NCBI GenBank assembly: GCA_907165135.1
Contig: OU015566.1
Coordinates: forward strand, 12,896,001-12,960,000
Direction: 5' to 3'
DNA: 64,000 nucleotides
Source: Oikopleura dioica
Taxonomy: Eukaryota > Animalia > Chordata
Below, one piece after another: positions 32,378-44,300 of the stretch. The notes under the pieces were generated by a model that did not search any database, had not been told where the DNA came from, and worked only from the letters and a program-made list of their open reading frames with translations. Numbering within the stretch: position 1 is the stretch's first letter; every line of letters begins with the position of its first letter. The position numbers and the translations under genes are program-made.

Positions 32378-35300
32378 CTAAAAAGAAGTAGTACAGCTAA
32401 GAGGGATCTGGGTTGGATAGGCTTGCAGCATATTTTATGGCAGTGGTGTTTTGGAAACATTTGGCTCAACCCGAAAAGATACCCTTCATCCCTTGTCGCT
32501 CGACAGATTGGCGGAGCCACTGCAGTTGCGGATTACTTATCATTGGCTGGTCCAGAGATCTCCAGTAGAGTGCTGAGAGTTCGACAGCAATTCTAGAGTA
32601 ACGGAATCGCGTGACAAACTCGATCATTGAATGATCACAAGATCTACTGTTGAGCTTTTTCTCGGCTAAACAAGATTAGCAAAAATGTCGGGCGGACTTG
32701 AATTTACCCATAAGATAAGCAGCAAATGCGGTGGCAGAAATCTCCTTTGACTGAATCAATGGCTGAAGCATGGTAACCAAGGCCGTGAAGTTTTCATTCT
32801 CAAGAAGAATCCAAGCGACGGTTTCGACTAAGCTCATATTTGGGCTCTCCAAAAGTTGTCGGCAAAGTGACATTTTTGACGAGTCCGGGAGTCGCTCAAG
32901 AATAGTTGGAAGAATTTGGACGTTTACTGGGAGGAATGGACAGTTGGAAAAGTGCTTCAACGCGAATCCGAACAAATTTGGAGCGTCCTTTCTGCGCATT
33001 GACCAGCTCAGAGCCTCCAAAGAGATGAACTCTTGATCCTGTTTCGCGACTTGTAGTGCGACTCCAAAGACCTCACTTAGATCACTCTCGTCATGTTCAT
33101 CGTACAGACGTTCAATGAGAATGAAGGAAAGCCAAATCCAAGGGACGGTTTCTTCACTAAGCTGGGAAGTCTGCGTGAATTTCGGAAGCGTTTCTGACAT
33201 TTCTTCCTTGAAGAATTTCGGGTAGTATCGCTCTAAGACTCCTCGAAGAAGAGCGCGAAGACTGACAGATCCTTCAGTCAAGGAAGTTTCTGTACCAACT
33301 TCGTAGAAAGGGATGATCATGTCTTCAATTGTCCTACAATTCAAAAGTAAGATAAAATAACTATTATATATATTTCTTACGATAAGGCGAATGCACAGAG
33401 CTCCTCATTCTCGACATCAAAAATGAATTTCCTCGCAACCAAGTAGGACATCTTCGGATGATTACTTAATTTACAAAGAGCTTCATTAAAAATTCCCATG
33501 GGCTCGACTCCCGGACAGCTTCCGACAAGCAACCAGACTAGCTTGCATTTTGATAGTTGCCTAGCAATAGAATGGGCAAACGCGGCGTGGCTTCCATCAA
33601 GAAGCACTAGAATCTCAAGCAAGGAAGTGACTAGATTTTCTGATTGCTCACTGTCGTCCCAGTTTGATACGGCGCGCTGGATGCCCTCGGAGATCTCTTC
33701 GAATACATCGCTCTTATTTATTGCGTCCGTGTTGTGAGTGAAAGGAGTAAGCTTTGGCGAGTGAATGGAGAATGACTCATGTGGAAAATCAAAGGTCAAG
33801 GGCACCTCCATTGAGAGATCGCAGGAATACTCCAATGGAAGGACTTTCATTGGGAAGGCATTAAACACGCGCAGATGAATAATTACGCACCAGATAAAGC
33901 ATTCAAATGAGCTTGGCAAATCGACGATATCAGGCAAACCCGATAAAAAGTCAGCGGCTTCGGATAAATTTGGCTCCATTGAATACAGAAATGCTCGATA
34001 AACAGCAGCATTGACGAACTCAAGATAATAACACTCCACGTCTCCGCTGCCTAATATTCTCGCTATATAACGCTCAATTGTTTTCGCTTTTTGCTTGGAG
34101 TTATTGATCCGATACTGCCAGAAATCACGATCAAGGGAGCAGTTGTCCTCGCAAAAGTCAATTACTTCCTCGAACTGAAGGCTCTCTGGCAGATTTAATT
34201 CAGAATGAAGCGCGAAAAAGTTTCTCCAAAGAGTTGAATTCGCCGGACTAGCTTCAAGTCCGTGGCAGATCGCGGCTAGAGCATATTTCGGACCATTGAG
34301 AATATTCGAACTCATGTATTTCTGAACAAGCTCAACAAGCGCTGGAACATTTTTAGCGTCATCTTTTGCTGTCGCTTCGAGTTCTTTGATAGAGCGCTCT
34401 AATTGCTCGTCGTAGAAATATCGCTCTTGTTGAGTAGCATGTTCGTCGTCTATGTATTCAGGTTGATTTTCGTCCTCAGGATAATCTGGCTGCTGCGCTA
34501 CTTTCGTCATTTTTCGAACGTTTTGCTTGCATTTGAATCCAGAGGATGCGTATTTAGAGACGATATGAGGCTCGTCTACGTTACTCTCCTTGTTGATTTC
34601 TTTGAAATAGAATTAAGCCATTGAAAACATGGAATAAGCTTACCTTCTACCAAAAGCACGCATTTCTGAGCCATATTGAGTTCAAGCTCCGACGGTAACA
34701 TTCTGTTCAAATACGCTTGAGTAGCTTTCAACTGATCGCTGTAATCAGTGAATGCGTCCATCTTGATAATGTCTCTGTTGTACGCGAGTAAATCGAGAAA
34801 CACTTCATGGCCTTGCATGGTTATGTCACGACGGTGCTGTCCTATGCATCGATCGTCGTTGCATCTACCAGAAAAGCTAAATTTTAAATAATAAATCAAG
34901 GTCGAAACTAGCCTCAACAAACCTATAACTAGGGATATCGCTTAAATTTCTAGGTACCCGAAAAAAGGGTCAAAATCAATTTTTAGATGGATGATCTAGT
35001 AGAACTTTTGACGAGGATTTCAATGCTGTCAAAATCATTTCATAAAAATCAGTCAGTTTCGTAAAAATGATGTGTCAGGGGGTGTTTTTTTCGATCAGGG
35101 TGAAACTTTCAAAATTTTGGAAATTGAAAATGCTAGACTAGCATAAATTTGGACGAGGATTCCAAATCTGCAAAAAATTTCACTGACGCACCTTGCAATC
35201 GCTAGAAATGAGTGTTCGGGAGTTGTTTTTTTCCTTCTCGACGCTTGTGGCGCTTTTCTGTTTTCAGCTGCGCGCTGATTGGTAGACGCTCCTGAGAGCC

Positions 35301-38300
35301 TTGCTCACAAAAATGCTCGAACAGGTTCAGCAAAATGATGATTTCTCGGGACTGAAACGTTGAAATTACATGATTCTTGGACCAAAAAAATTCTTGAAGA
35401 CCACTTTATCAAATTTGATATAAAAATAATGTTTTTTTGATTGCAAAAACCAGTAAATGACTTTCAATTATCGTTTTTCTTTCATGGTTGAGTAAATAAA
35501 AGGGCCAGAATTTCTGAAAGATAATCCTGAAGATGAAGCTGTATTGGTTGATGACGTGGTAAAGAGTTTTTTTGAGGTTGCATGAATTTGGAGTGTTTCA
35601 CTGATTATCTGAGCCATTCGCCTGTGGCGCGTTTATGTGGCGCCCTCTTTTGGAGAGCCGGGTGGTACTCATCTCGGTTTACGGCGCAGATTTTCATTTT
35701 ATATTAGAGCTTGAGATTTAAGAAAAAAATGACCGAAGGAGAAACACCCACCCCATCAGAAGGTTTGAACTTTTAAGCCCAAGTACATTTACGATAGCGA
35801 AAATGTTAAGTAAAGACATGATTTATGTAAGAAATATTTACAAATTTCATTTATCAAAATATTTTATTTGGGCTTAAAAGTTCAAACCTTTTTTTTCGAT
35901 TCTTCCTGCCATCAAAAAGCGAAGCACGCCCGACGATGGATCATGTGCTTCATAAGCGTAGCTGCTTTAATCTTGGGGATAATTGGTAAGTCAAAATCAT
36001 TATGATAGAATTTTTCGAACCAAAATAGTTTCTTGTTCAAAACCCGGTTAACTTTTACTTTAGAAACCGTTGAAACAGAAAATGCTCCTTGGACAATGAT
36101 GACAACAACTACAACGCCAACAACAACTACCACACGAGAGTTCATTTGCGGTCCCGGAGGCGCTTCCCGACAATATGCAATTTGGAGATTGAAAAATTGC
36201 TAAATTTCTTTGCCACTATGTCTTTTTATTACTGCTAATTGAAAAATATAATAATATCAATCATGGAATTTTTATCTGTCTATTCTTTTTGAGCAGCTGT
36301 TGGGTTAGGTAAAAGAAAAGATCAACGATGAGTAAAACGACGTGTTGGAATCTCCGGGTTTCAGCGGAGGGCGGACGGAAGTACATGGAAGACGTCACTG
36401 CGGTGCACTTTGAGCGAGTCAACTCTGTTACATTCGCAAGCTTCGCGTTCACACTTTTTCATCATTATTATATTGTGCTTCAGGATCAATTGATGGGATT
36501 CATCAAACGAGAGAAGGGTTTCTTCTCGACAAGATGTGATCTTGTGAAGAAGGCCATCCGCGCTGGATTCCTTGCTTGCCACGAAGCCATGGCTAAAAAA
36601 CTTCGTGAATAGCAATCAATTTGAAATAGAAATAAACGAGAGATAAATTTAATTATGCTGACTGGCAGAAAACAGTTTTGGGACATCCTTGTACTGCTGA
36701 GACCACGGCCGCACTAGTGATTATCCCTGAAAACAAACTGTACGTTGCTCCTGTGGGTGATTTGGCGGTGATCATGGGCATTCAAAGAGATGACGACGCT
36801 CTGCTGGAAACAATCACTTTGATCGAAGATCACAAACCAGAAAGTCTGAAAGAAAGGAGGCGAATAGAAGCGCACGGTGGCACCGTGATCAACAAGACCC
36901 GTGTCAACCGCGTTGTCTGGGAGAGCCCGAAGTTGAGCCACTCGGGAGCCGTCCGACGCTCTACAGAACTCGACGAAATCGCCTTCCTCGCCGTCGCAAG
37001 GAGTCAGGGTGATCTTTGGTCATGGAACACGAAAACCAACTCGTATGTGGTAAGTACTTCTCTTACCGCAAACAGAGCATGAAGAAGCTCAATTGACGAA
37101 AAAAACTTTCACGATTTTGCTCTGAATCCGTGTTCACGGTCGGATGATAAGCAAACGTTCCAATTTCTGATGAGCTTAATGAACATATAATTAAAAAAAT
37201 ACACCATGTTTCGGTAGTTTAAAAATTAATTTAGGTCAGTCCTGATCCGGATGTGGAAGTACACGACTTAAAAAATCAGGATCTCGCTTCATCATTTTGG
37301 CGTCGGAGTGAGTAACCAACATGATCAGATCACATGACGCGGTGAACATGGTCTCTGAGTTCGAGGCGCGAAAACGCGCGGCGAGGTTGCCGGAACATCA
37401 GCTCATGAACTGGCCAGAAACGCACTCAGAAGATGGTCAGAAAGGAACATGCGCGCGGACAACTCCTCGGCGATTGTCGTCTACATCGAAAAGAAAAAGA
37501 TGGAGCCCAAGAACTGCGCGTAGAGCTAGGAGAGCACGAACAAGAACCGACACGTCAAGACGCCAGTATCCGAGAAGATCGCTAGGAGGATAGCTCAACT
37601 GAGACCGCCACTTACGGGAGTGTCCCAGATCAAGACTGCTCCACTCAAGACGTCAAGAAAGAGAGTGACTACCGAGAACACTACCGAGAACGACTGGCTT
37701 CATATAATTTTTAGTTAAAAAAGAATCAGTTTGGGAGAAACTGAATTGTGCCACCCTGCGCCGCCCGGCTCGGCCCTTAACCAAACGGAATTCTAGTTCT
37801 TCTTTGGTGGTAGTTTCCCTTTTCCAATTATATTGTTAAACTAGAGATTGCTCACTAAGAAACAGGCTTCATAATAAGCCCCTTAACTCGATGATAGCTA
37901 AGTCCCAAAAAAATTGTTCGACCTAAAAGTTTGCGAGATCGGCGGTGAGGCACCCCTTAAGCGCGTATTTTCTGATAAAGAATTAATCGGGTCGGAAGGG
38001 TTCAACTCTCGCTCTGGTTCAGACCTGTTTCCTTGAACATGTTTGGGTCGGAAGCTTAAGAACCGAGCGACGCTAGACGGCGCAGAGCGGCGCAGGGCGG
38101 CGAAATTCAGTACACCTCATCAATATTATTTATTAAAATTTATTAAAATAAATAATTTATAGAAGCCCATTTAAGATAATCGGAATATTGAGAAAACGTT
38201 CAGCCATATAAAGCATATTGAAAATTACGACTTTCGATCCCAGAATATTAAAATATGGCGATCTGCGATAGCAAAGGTAATTGTGGCGAACACTCATAAC

Positions 38301-41300
38301 AGAAGAACACAAACAGCATTAGGTCTTTCCCAAAAATATTGTAATATTTTATAGCAAAATATGGCGACAGAATTCCTTGATGATTTGGATGAAATACCCG
38401 CGGAGGACTTAGTATGGAAAGCATACCGTCGAAAATCTCTTCAAAAAGAAGAAGATCAAAATCATGAATTAATGATTAAGCAACAAATTTTAAGCTGTTC
38501 ATAATCATTTTTGTTTATTCAAGAAGAATCAACAAGATCATTTACAGTTTTGTCAAGTTGTCGAAAATGATTTAAGAAGGTTTTAACTTAACAGTCAATA
38601 AAATTTTTTTTAATTATCTAATAGTTACCCTTGGTATATTTTTGTCGGGAATTTTTTCTTTCCATCTTGAAGCTTTCGCAAATTTGTTCAAACGCATCAG
38701 TCAGAGATCTTTATTTTCTCAATAAAATCGCAATTTGCGAATATTTTGCGATTGTGAAGCGTAATTTCGCAATCGCAAAAACCTTTTTGATCGATTTGCG
38801 AGCGTATTGTTTTGCTAGAACCTCCGTTATCGCCAATAAGTCGCGTATTGAGATTTTTCGCGAATTTCTGTATTTTTAAAATGAGTTTTCTTTGACTGAA
38901 ATTTCTTAATTTTTTCAAAAATTTTTTTCTATTCATTAAAATTTCGCAAATAGCGACAAAATCGCAATTCGCGAAAAAATCGCAGTCGCGTCGGAATTTC
39001 AGGAGTTCTTTGCTTCACGATTGCATCGCAATCGCAATTGAATTTTGACGAAAATTTAGATCCCTGGCATCAGTAAAAGTTTCCAGTCGTGTTTCTCGGC
39101 GTTGAAGCTTATCTGTATCCGGTAAAGCTAAATAATCATAAAAAATTGGACTAACAAATTGTAAACTTAATTGAAACTCTTGTTCGAGCGTTTGCGTTCC
39201 CGTCCAACTCGAAAGATCTCTTATACGGGGTTCATATCAAGTTTTCTGAGCGCTCTTTGCAAGAACAGGGGAGCTTTTGAATACTGGACCCGATCTTAAA
39301 AGTAGACCAAATTCTCCATGTCGAATTTTTCTATTGAGATCGCGTAGAGTTGCCTCGATAAATCCCTTTGATTTTTGAGCAATCGCAATTTTGAAGCTTA
39401 AAATGAGTCATCATCTAGTTTTCGAAATAACCTACATTATAAAATGGGTGACAGGTATATTCAAATCTGGAAACAGCAAAAACTCGTTGACGTGTTCACC
39501 AATAGTTTTGTAAAAAGAACATGCTACGGAATAGTTTTTATTTTTGGGTAGAAATTTTTCACCATTAGTATTTGATTCATCAATGACAAAATTGCTTCCG
39601 AAATATGCCCGATTGTTGAAATTGTACTCTTCTAAGCTCATTTGATTGGCAGCGCACTGTGGTTGGTAGATCAAGAAGGGAAAAATTGCATAAAGCGACC
39701 GAATCTATCATGAGTTTTCACGAATTTTCACGAAAAATCCTTGACAGAACATTTCTGTCTGACGCCGACCGGTCCAAAAGGGGTTATTTTCAAACAGCGG
39801 CCGTAGGCGGCCGAGGACGGCCTTTGTCAGTGTCCCTGGAAAAAAAAAGAATAGATATCGCTTTATGCAACCTGCCCCTTCAGAGAAGCGGTTGTTCTCT
39901 GGAATGGATAATTCTCATCTTAAAAAAAGATTTTGATAGCTGTTTTTATAGGTTAACTTTTTAAAAATATCAGAAATTATTTCAAAATCATTTCCTTGTA
40001 GTCCAAATTTTAAATAAATTTCCAAAACGCTCGAACAGTACTGTCCTGACTCGAATTTTCCAAGAAATATTTTTCCTCGCTGTGAAAGTTTTTTTAATAT
40101 TTGAATATTTCCGCTATTAAAAATAATGTTAGAACTTTCTCTCTAAAGTCGTCTTCATACTTTCTCTTTCTTCATATTTAGGAAAACGTTCATTCAAATT
40201 GAAATCATTTTTAGTAAGAACGAAGTGAAAAAAATGGATCAAGAATATTTTAACAAAATTCATACTTAAATTGATATGAAGCAAGTTTTTTTCAGAAATT
40301 ATGGTTCTTGGCATTTCACCAATTTTTAATCTTGCCTAAAGCCACGAAAGATCGATTTGATAATGATCGATAATTTTTTCAAAAATATTTGAATTTGAAA
40401 GATGAAGAAAATCAATTCGCGTAGGAGCATTGTGCGCAAAATGTGTGATTCCATCGATTATGAAAGCAAAGACGATGTCGCGATTTAAAAATATAGTCGA
40501 GTAGTGTTTAGTCGAGTGAACGATCTGGCCAAATAAGATCTTCAGCAGAGATCAGTATGTTTGTTTTATAATATACCTTTTCCGACATTTCATCGAACAT
40601 TCAAAAGATCTCTTCTTCCTTTCCAATAATGATTACATCGTAAGCATCTTTGAAAAGAAAGTACAAATCCTTATTAACTTCGTACTCGGCAAGATCTTTT
40701 TTGAGAAGAATGACCTTGTGTCTTCCACCCGGGCCATTTTTGATGTCTTCTCCAAGCCAGTCTTCTCCGAGTCCGAATTTTTTGCTTTTTAGACCAGAGT
40801 ATTTTACAGATTCTACTCAACAAAGAAGAGATCTCGCTCTTATTTCATTGTGTCTTTAAAGTATTTTTACTATTCCCTTCAGAAGTTCAGCTTTACTTTC
40901 TTCACAAAAAAGAACTCTTTTACGTAATAATTCATAAATTTCTTTTCTTTAAGTAATAAGAGTGGGAGCAATTCATGGGAGATGTAGGTGGCTCAGGTTG
41001 ACTTGCTCTCGGCGTCAGTCTAGGTTAGTCTTAGCAATTCGAATTCTCGAAGCTTGCTCATCTCGGACAGAAAAAAGCGGTCCAAGATAAGATCGAGAGA
41101 CTCAAACAGGAGCGCTTGCAAAAGGAAAAAACCAAGTTGGAGGAGCACAAACAGATCGAAGAAGCTAAACTAACCACTGAAGAGAAATTGAAGCAAGGTT
41201 GTCAGAAGCTTGAAGCAATCAAGGTCGTCTCCAACAACGCTCTACTCTCATTAAACTCTGTCGGTAATGATTTGGAAACGATTCCGACCGCCCTCCTGGG

Positions 41301-44300
41301 CAAAAACGAACGCGTTGTCTTCAAGTTAGGTCAGTTCATTCTCAGTCTCATCGTCAATTTCTCTGGATATTGCCCAGTTACTCTGCTCGCTGCGTCGAAG
41401 ATTCCTTCAAATCCAGAACTCGAAAAGAACGATTTCAAAGGATGGTTCTCCTAAGATTGCACCAACAGATTCCTCTTCATCACAAAAGAAAAGCTCCAAG
41501 AGCAAAACCCAGGGCACCTGTTCGTTCTTATGGCTCACTGCATGGCGCATTTGACCAACGATCTGAATCCCCAGTTCCGAAACGAGTTCTACCGGCTCCT
41601 CGCAAAGATATCGACTCACATCTTCCAAATTCAAACTGCACCTGAAATGCAACTGCCACTTGATTCTCTGGAAAGTCAAAAGAAAATGTTGAGTACACGC
41701 CTGCAGAAATCAAAGCCATTTTAGAGCGAAAAGAAAACTTGATCTGAGCCGAGGTGAGCTTGACAGTGATCTTGAGACACTTCCAGTCGCCAGTGGCCTT
41801 GCAGATGTCGTTACCAATCTTCTTGTGGGAGAGACCGAGGGGGCACGGACTTCGCAAACAACAACTCGGAGGTAGACCTCGACGATGGGAGCGGTGGGAT
41901 CGAACTTAGGCAGATATTTCCACTCTTGTCAACAAACGAAGCTTCAAATTCACTCAAGCTTGTCAGGCTCCTAGAGACGGACAATGCAATTAAATTTTTC
42001 GTATGAAAAATTGAAAAAAACTACCTAATCTACCTATAATTTTTAATAAAAAACTCATTTTCTTTATGAAATATTCTTAATAACATTTAAATATCCTTAT
42101 TCATCAAAAAAAACAACTTAAAAGCTCCAAAAATATGCAATTTTATGAAAAATCGCATAAAATAGTAAAGAGAAAAGAATGTGAGTCTGGCTAGCTTGGC
42201 CATGCAGCGCGCGCGCCCCCGTGCGGCCGCCTCCAAAATGACGCAACGCCGCTCAGAATTCACCTCGGAAAACTTTAAAAATTCATATTTTCAAAACGCG
42301 AGGTGCGTCAGTGAATTTTTTTACAGATTTGGGTTTCTCAGCCCAATATCTATTAGGAAAAAATAAAAAATCATTAACGACAAAACAGTTCTCGTACTGA
42401 TCCGAAAAATGAGGTTTTTGAAGGCCATTTTTACGAAACTGACTGATTTTTATGAAATGATTTTGACAGCATTGAAATCCTCGTCAAAAGTTCTACTAGA
42501 TCATCCATCTAAAAATTGATTTTGACCCTTTTTTCGGGTACCTAGAAATTTAAGCGATATCCCTACCTATAACCACAGATGGGCGCGTTGCAGTCTACTT
42601 TATGCGTATAAGTAGCCGAGGCTATTGAAAAATTCTCGCGGAAATATGGCGAGAATCGATACGATCGAAATTTAAGGAGTGGCGATTTGAATTTGCCCTT
42701 GTTCTCAAGTGGTTTCATGTCTTTTGCGAGATACGTTTTCGGCAGAATATCCCGTTCGGTTGCAATCGGCATTTTGTCATTTTCTGTTATTTCTTCGACG
42801 AGTTTTATATGTGCAATTTTATGTCGGTGTGTGCAAAGAGATTTGATTTTTTCTTCGAAAGTGCTTCGTGTAACGAGTGAATATGGATCTGGCGGGGTTG
42901 TGACGCGCGCTGGCATTTCTGGCAATGGCTCGAACTCGTAATCATCGTCGGGTGGTACTGGGCTACTTCTAGTTGCGAGAAGGGGTTCTCCGTTTCCCTC
43001 GCCTCCGTGGATGAGCTGTGTTTGTTGTTGAACAACTACGAATAAAAGATAGTGTAAATCCTTCAAAACAACTTACTTTGTTGATCAATCTTCTCTTGAG
43101 TTGAATCCGCGAGTTTTTTTAGCTTACGCTCCAGCTCAGCTTTTTGCTCATTCAGCTTAGCCCGCATAATTATCTTCCTATTTTCATCCGCGTCAGCATC
43201 ATCAAGTCCATACTGCTCCTGCAAATTGCTAATTTCTACTCGCCGCTCTAAAATGTCCGTCTTCGCTGTTTCAATGTCTATCACCATATTGTTCACAATA
43301 TCCTTTATCGAGCGCTGATATTCTGTATTTTCTCGCAAGTAGCGTTCATATGACGCAACTTTGACCATCAGTACTTCTAGTGATTCTTTGACTTGTTTCT
43401 TCTCTTCTATCTTTTTTGATCGCAATTCTTTGAAGCTCTTGATTGACTGTCTGTCTCGCACGATTTTCGCATGATGATGTCTTATCGATTGCTTGAGCTT
43501 ATCAATTTGCTGTCTTGCTTGCTCCTCGTTCTCGACTTCATCATCTGTCGATTCTATGTCTTCTGATGATGAGTAATTATCAACCACAACAGGAGGATGT
43601 AAGGGAAGAACATCGTTAGCCTGCAAAGAATCATTGATGCTTAGATCTGGAAGAACAGGAGCTTGTTCTGTGAAACTCGTCTCAAGAATTGAACTGTTCA
43701 TTGTCTCTTCATTTTGCAATCCGCCATCTCTAGAATCCATGGTGTAATCAGCTAGTGTTGAGCCTTGTGTTGCGTCTTGTGAGTTGAAAGTTCTGTCCAT
43801 CACAGCTTGGTCCGTGTGATACTCATCGTCTCTAGTTGTTGTCATCGGCACTTCAAAAACAGGACTTTCCCCTGCCTCTCGATTTTGATCTGTTGTTGGT
43901 CTTGGCTCTATTTCCACGGTCATTGCGGATGATTCAGGCACTTCAGTCGCTGGAGGAGCGGATAAAGTCGGAGAGATCTCGTCCATAATCGTGAAGGAGC
44001 CATTGATTCCAGCTTGATCAGCTGATTCCGAGCGCGGGCGCGCAACGACATCGACGTAGATTGGGTGTTCGAAGCTAGTGGATCTATGGCGGCCTTCGGC
44101 GTAGGAGCTCAAATTTGTATCTGGAGGTAGTTTATTTGGATTGGCATGAATTTTAATCCCACGTCTTGCCATGACTTGCTTGAGGAGTTGATTTCGTAGC
44201 TCGGCTTCTGATTCTGAAGGCTGTCTTTTCGCGCTCCTCGATTCGTTCGCACTCGAATTGTCCGGCGGCCTCACTGTTCTTTTATAACCTGGATCGTCAC

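Follow-up and report, generated by a model that had tools for sequence, protein, structure and literature searches.

A Pack-type DNA transposon within the 5′ splice site of a ZFC3H1 homologue in Oikopleura dioica, and the candidate donor that it rebuilds

Introduction

Maize Ds is a hAT element that makes an 8-bp target-site duplication, and recursive splicing at zero-length exons, the ratchet points of long Drosophila introns where an acceptor is directly followed by a donor, removes those introns in two steps. In a published model of intron gain, a transposon enters AGGT, its target-site duplication leaves AG|GT on both sides and the element is removed precisely; Giroux et al. 1994, on maize Ds, is among the cases listed (PMC3443670). 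Introners and introns derived from miniature inverted-repeat transposable elements (MITEs) are described from Micromonas, dinoflagellates and Fritillaria borealis (PMC11282704, PMC9860276), and in fungal [D1,2] stwintrons a donor is split between positions +1 and +2, with removal in one or two steps (PMC12403724). Here we describe a related arrangement in Oikopleura dioica, in a window of 64,000 nt (the whole stretch analysed: GenBank assembly GCA_907165135.1, contig OU015566.1, positions 12,896,001 to 12,960,000 of the forward strand; all coordinates below are those of the window). Its sequence leads us to favour, on balance, the reading that a Pack-type element recently entered the donor of a conserved intron, 46 nt long, in a ZFC3H1 homologue, and that the resulting allele is spliced and so masks itself.

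Results

A transposon between the first two bases of a short intron

The elements of the locus that bear on this reading are as follows, with the host gene on the minus strand.

42567-43035, minus strand: upstream host exon, ending ...CCCATCTGTGGTTATAG, its last 2 nt being part of a Ser codon; frame by ortholog model P0002
34877-34922, minus strand: ancestral intron, intact in the filled allele; 46 nt, gtttgttgag...aaaatttag
34644-34876, minus strand: downstream host exon (exon 2), starting CTTTTCTGG; second half of the zf-C3H1 finger
34930-42565, no strand assigned: non-autonomous, provisionally hAT-like Pack-type DNA transposon, 7,636 bp
42426-42565: terminal inverted repeat (TIR), the arm transcribed first in the host pre-mRNA, 140 bp
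34930-35069: TIR, second arm, 140 bp
42566-42573: target-site duplication, exon-side copy, GTTATAGG on the gene strand
34922-34929: target-site duplication, copy beside the old intron, giving a putative TTATAG acceptor that touches the old donor, G(34922)TTTGT

The two TIRs are complementary at 140 of 140 positions and both begin TAGGGATATCGC; a 31-nt pattern of these ends occurs twice in the window, at both element ends, against a chance expectation of 0.00. A perfect 8-bp direct repeat, CCTATAAC on the plus strand, flanks the element on both sides and is single-copy in the empty site; it consists of the last seven exon bases and the first G of the intron. Read on the minus strand, the exon closes with ...TGTGGTTATAG (42567), and G (42566) and then the TAGGG of the TIR come next, while beyond the element the gene strand reads GTTATAG, then G(34922)TTTGTTGAG...AAAATTTAG(34877), and exon 2 opens at 34876 with CTTTTCTGGTAGATGC. 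A 9-bp duplication is formally possible, but it breaks the symmetry of the TIRs. Other copies of the family in DNA run X1 share the TIR up to 42565 and diverge exactly beyond it, giving ...CCCTA as the family end; the TIR therefore starts with T, and the 8-bp duplication is favoured.

Inward of the TIRs a weaker subterminal similarity goes on. One stretch of about 95 nt (35138-35233) partly repeats the inner TIR (34996-35092) at about 75% identity and also pairs with 42298-42356; such subterminal repeats may be binding-site repeats.

The empty site and the ancestral state

With the open reading frame (ORF) that ends at the insertion as query, we found a protein, P0001, whose tail is exactly what reading through the predicted empty site would give. 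The contigs behind it, L001 and L002, belong to two marine-metagenome assemblies; once the element and one copy of the duplication are taken out, the window aligns collinearly with them over 1,273 nt at 97.4% identity and 868 nt at 97.0% identity, respectively. The junction in both reads GTTATAGGTTTGTTGAGG, with one duplication copy and no excision footprint. The 46-nt intron is identical in these contigs, and the differences nearest to the junction are at 42629 and 34819, none falling within about 55 nt of it; a further exon difference lies at 42673. The presence of the predicted empty site in two metagenome contigs indicates that the insertion is real, recent and polymorphic. In a divergent lineage (L003-L005, about 72% protein identity) a 39-nt intron interrupts the same codon, which makes the short intron, and with it the empty site, the ancestral state. 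These sequences show the anatomy of the filled allele, the empty allele and this ancestral state.

The original prediction had placed the insertion between intron positions +1 and +2 of an existing donor, and the positions of TIRs and duplication, as well as the two empty-site contigs, bear this out. The same contigs confirm that taking away the element and one duplication copy restores the 46-nt intron, and the predicted lengths, 46 nt in the empty and 7,690 nt in the filled allele, agree with the coordinates. Two features went beyond that prediction: the old donor and its 46-nt intron survive intact near the acceptor, and the duplication gives rise to putative AG acceptors where the element ends on the far side.

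DNA run X1 yielded an 11.5-kb contig that spans the exon-TIR junction, reaching 30 nt into the repeat, and shows 0 differences, which rules out misassembly. The flank shows no second haplotype in this run, and unique cargo has a depth of 177-194 against 198 for the flank; the sequenced animal, a male, therefore appears to carry only the filled allele, in homozygous or hemizygous state. An exact look-up of the ORF product of the filled allele found it not on record.

Two further observations concern the comparison sequences. The 39-nt intron of the divergent lineage (L003:1540-1585, also in L004 and L005) is a multiple of three and stop-free; gene callers read straight through it (P0004), and its retention would add 13 residues inside the zinc finger. 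Between the window and L001 there are 34 differences, of which 5 lie in a single neighbouring intron of the host gene, as fits the high neutral diversity that this species is reported to have:

43036-43076, minus strand: neighbouring intron used as comparator; 41 nt, GTAAGT...TCGTAG, typical of the genome; frame checked against P0002

The host gene

Joining 42567 to 34876 gives a peptide that covers positions 1-20 of the 22-position Pfam profile zf-C3H1 (PF10650) with 18.0 bits and agrees with the spliced model of ortholog P0002, which itself reaches 19.8 bits; both scores fall just under the cut-off of 20.9 bits. A phmmer search with P0002 returned relatives of 1,900-2,300 aa to which NCBI gives the name zinc finger C3H1 domain-containing protein, and for the 377-aa exon downstream the protein atlas, by matches of features and models and not by alignment, leads to HAT-repeat families. 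Taken together, the PF10650 match, the named relatives and the HAT-repeat pointers uphold the predicted ZFC3H1 label, and we identify the host gene from its sequence as a ZFC3H1 homologue on the minus strand. The organism belongs to the Oikopleura dioica complex, and an NCBI O. dioica protein is 58% identical to the upstream exon. When the 671-aa exon was used to look for a public gene model that covers the element, only orthologs from other lineages came up, within a search whose length limit a full-length model would surpass; neither Pfam on individual host exons nor a sequence search of the PDB was informative. The host exons nearby all remain open, with no damage.

A candidate rebuilt donor and a stacked GT...AG unit

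At the exon side, the duplication's G (42566) and the TIR's first T together form AG|GTAGGG, the donor that had been predicted. The far copy of the duplication reads ...CCCTAGTTATAG|GTTTGT, that is, an AG acceptor abutting the untouched old donor. Three features of the filled allele follow the gene strand:

34923-42566, minus strand: element plus 8 bp, a full GT...AG unit of 7,644 nt, as read from the sequence
34929-34930, minus strand: competing AG of a putative CCCTAG acceptor, made of the TIR's last base and the duplication's first G
42563-42565, minus strand: in-frame TAG, met at once if the rebuilt donor is unused

Excision of the 7,644-nt unit would regenerate the pre-mRNA of the empty allele, and a join of 42567 to 34876 would keep the reading frame, as P0002 and the zf-C3H1 match confirm for a claim already made in the original prediction. 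Its read-through stop also proves correct by coordinates: an unspliced transcript would enter TAGGGATATC. The CCCTAG acceptor sits 6 nt before the TTATAG acceptor, and splicing there would insert 6 nt (Tyr-Ser) into the finger. The resulting product would stay in frame with C-x9-C finger spacing, its Pfam score falling from 18.0 to 15.7 bits and its match losing the first Cys.

The rebuilt AG|GTAGGG and the old AG|GTTTGT each match 6 of 9 consensus positions, and the U1 duplex, computed with a canonical U1 5′ end taken from general knowledge, is predicted at -9.9 kcal/mol for the rebuilt donor versus -6.2 kcal/mol for the old one. By these simple measures, the rebuilt donor is predicted to be no weaker than its predecessor. 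Because both ends of the element start with T, the GT would be rebuilt in either orientation; given an AG|G site, completion of the GT is certain for this family, and the coincidence is limited to one nucleotide, the TIR's first T. That this particular insertion is the one observed is a matter of survivorship bias. A duplex between the TIRs in the RNA would form a 140-bp stem, predicted at -238 kcal/mol, which would bring the ends of the element together.

The lineage has a median intron of 49 bp (PMC8008620) and 11% non-GT/AG introns (PMC8008620, PMC7072748), the latter pointing to a spliceosome that is permissive at donors. A splice-site weight matrix built from introns of the window was dropped; the introns came from ORF-pair heuristics, and GT-AG was not enriched over control dinucleotides among them.

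A non-autonomous carrier of host-gene fragments

To our knowledge, there are few reports of Pack-type elements from animals. Among the element's 103 stop-to-stop segments of at least 40 aa, taken from all six frames, none gave a Pfam match to a transposase domain. The cargo instead comprises pieces of host genes, two of which could be placed:

36636-37079, plus strand, antisense to the host gene: PP2C phosphatase fragment, Pfam E = 1.7e-17
41750-41907, minus strand, sense: decayed fragment of ribosomal protein uL11 (RPL12-like), Pfam L11_N 2.5e-5

The six-frame segments also contain a fragment of a PLOD glycosyltransferase (GT) domain (Pfam 6e-16), which was not found among the element's 20 longest segments. 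We identify the element from this content as a non-autonomous carrier of host-gene pieces.

Members of the hAT superfamily carry the terminal motif 5′-YARNG. Two hAT traits are present here, the 8-bp target-site duplication and ends that both start TAGGG, fitting that motif, while the transposase, with its BED finger, DDE and hAT dimerisation domain, is missing. The 140-bp TIRs are atypical for hAT elements (about 10-25 bp), and the target GTTATAGG, set against the hAT consensus nTnnnnAn, shares the T of position 2 and carries G in place of A at position 7. Duplications of 8 bp are made by P, Merlin and Novosib elements as well. Since the element is without a transposase, its assignment to the hAT superfamily, which draws on the element ends alone, is provisional.

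The window holds one copy of the element. In DNA run X1 the TIR has about 6-fold depth, and at least two other contigs continue into different flanks; this depth and the divergence of contigs after 42565 mean that the family has a few more copies in the X1 genome. The TIR end gave 0 matches in a JGI metagenome scan. One X1 contig skips exactly 310 nt inside the cargo (37769-38078), a piece bracketed by 30-nt inverted repeats (37740-37769; the other ends at 38111), and has the look of a small element that sits inside the cargo and that another copy lacks. X1 contigs also join across gaps of 1,017 nt (40936-41952) and 619 nt (41740-42358) inside the element, which suggests that the family has shorter derivatives, formed by deletion, at other places in that genome.

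Three oligo-dT RNA runs under the same species label (X24, X26 and X27) were aligned to 37400-43400 at 90% likeness or more. Reads fall only on cargo pieces, at 90-95% identity; the uL11 piece (41842-41907), for example, drew about 2,800, and 37446-37528 drew tens. We considered real splice sites within the uL11 fragment and rejected them; the read boundaries there come from sequence divergence, not introns. The species label seems to cover deeply diverged lineages.

Is the filled allele spliced?

From the sequence we infer that the filled allele would be spliced and would work, by the following course of events. An 8-bp staggered cut over the last seven exon bases and the first G of the intron would, on repair, set the exon-side copy (...AG|G) before the TIR's T and thereby yield the AG|GTAGGG donor, while the far copy would place an AG acceptor at the intact old donor and so stack a GT...AG unit on the old intron. 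Normal mRNA could then arise by a single 7,690-nt splice from 42567 to 34876, by removal of the 7,644-nt unit followed by that of the 46-nt intron, or by removal of the 46-nt intron followed by a splice from 42567 to the TTATAG acceptor.

Several points weigh against this reading. The predicted stem can lock positions +2 to +6 of the rebuilt donor, and poly(A) motifs in the element on the sense strand (7 AATAAA and 6 ATTAAA) could truncate the transcript. A genome tuned to short introns (about 47 nt) may favour the old donor, with its acceptor 46 nt away; if that donor is used first, the rebuilt one would depend on the putative TTATAG or CCCTAG acceptors. Across the host exons (42567-43400) depth is zero in all three RNA runs; taken with the 90-95% identity on the cargo, this makes them appear to derive from another cryptic lineage. 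The argument that the X1 male has only the filled allele uses contig depths, some records having been filtered out, and ZFC3H1 may be dispensable, so that an animal with only the filled allele is no proof that the allele works.

A rival reading is a filled allele that is null or a strong hypomorph, through read-through to the TAG at 42565-42563, internal poly(A) cleavage or mis-splicing, and that persists as a very young insertion, in a non-essential gene or by drift in a small culture. We regard this as possible, if clearly less probable than a spliced allele. A stop directly after GYR, 13 poly(A)-like hexamers in sense orientation, a 7.7-kb intron about 150 times the genome's median and a donor that can hide in a stem of predicted -238 kcal/mol all speak for it, as do the empty allele in wild metagenomes and the ORF of the filled allele, which is without record elsewhere. 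The apparently filled-allele-only male speaks against it, however, as do the open, undamaged host exons nearby and a rebuilt donor as good as the old one. It is unlikely, in our view, that splicing goes mainly through the first AG (CCCTAG, 34930-34929), in which case 6 added nucleotides and a C-x9-C finger would leave the function altered rather than masked. This AG is the first after the TIR, 6 nt ahead of the TTATAG acceptor, and its product would be in frame with a Pfam match that loses its first Cys; but its use needs the 6-nt TTATAG as a micro-exon, or re-use of the old donor, and a direct splice to the strong native acceptor sidesteps this requirement. We consider it very improbable that misassembly created the insertion, or that the short allele arose by excision and is not the ancestral one. 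Long repeats could in principle mislead an assembler, but an independent short-read contig spans the exon-TIR junction and the 8-bp duplication is perfect; as for excision, the empty sites have exactly one duplication copy and no footprint, and a short intron stands at the same place in the divergent lineage.

Discussion

If the filled allele does make normal mRNA, a transposon has landed on a splice site without harm to the gene, and a 46-nt intron has grown 160-fold in one step in one of the most compact animal genomes. The locus would then offer a natural pair of filled and empty alleles in a culturable chordate and would help to give a direct handle on the rapid intron turnover of Oikopleura; a broken allele would make it a young, deleterious insertion of the ordinary kind. 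A broader idea, which we hold to be unlikely, is that the termini of this family (a TIR starting with T, an 8-bp duplication and TIRs that pair) make insertions at ...AG|G invisible in mRNA, the stem bringing the rebuilt donor to the native acceptor, and that such insertions are a working source of both intron expansion and intron gain in Okinawa Oikopleura dioica.

Among described systems, Pack-MULEs and other transduplicating transposons (PMC2572040, PMC1947982) share with this element long TIRs around several host-gene fragments (here PP2C, PLOD GT and uL11) and the lack of a transposase, whereas the 8-bp duplication and TAGGG terminus here point to hAT and not to Mutator. Introners are likewise non-autonomous DNA transposons with TIRs and a duplication, with two splice sites of which the element supplies one and the duplication the second, and the MITE-derived introns of larvaceans share a larvacean host with a permissive spliceosome. 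They differ from our locus in forming a short, multi-copy family that has been demonstrated in many introns, while we describe a single 7.6-kb copy full of gene fragments.

As in stwintrons, near-terminal inverted repeats can join the ends, and one-step and two-step excision would give the same mRNA. In a stwintron, however, the unit between donor +1 and +2 is a canonical GT...AG intron in its own right and has to be excised first, and in the +1/+2 register the insert here reads TA...GG, which is not an intron; it reads GT...AG only if shifted by one base, between the exon and the old donor, and it stems from a transposon and the duplication of its target. The far end, ...TTATAG|GTTTGT, resembles a ratchet point in having an acceptor directly followed by a donor, but the site here is putative, was made in one step by target duplication and is not a conserved regulatory site.

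The closest counterpart is the AGGT model of intron gain. As in that model, the duplication copies AG|G, the element and duplication form a GT...AG unit, and its removal would leave the transcript unchanged. Here, by contrast, the target is an existing exon-intron junction in place of an exon, the TIR and not the duplication provides the T of the upstream GT, and the outcome would be a stacked or expanded intron without a new intron position. The new detail is modest, namely that the target is an existing donor and that a single TIR base completes the GT; the locus is the textbook AGGT transposon model applied to an existing donor.

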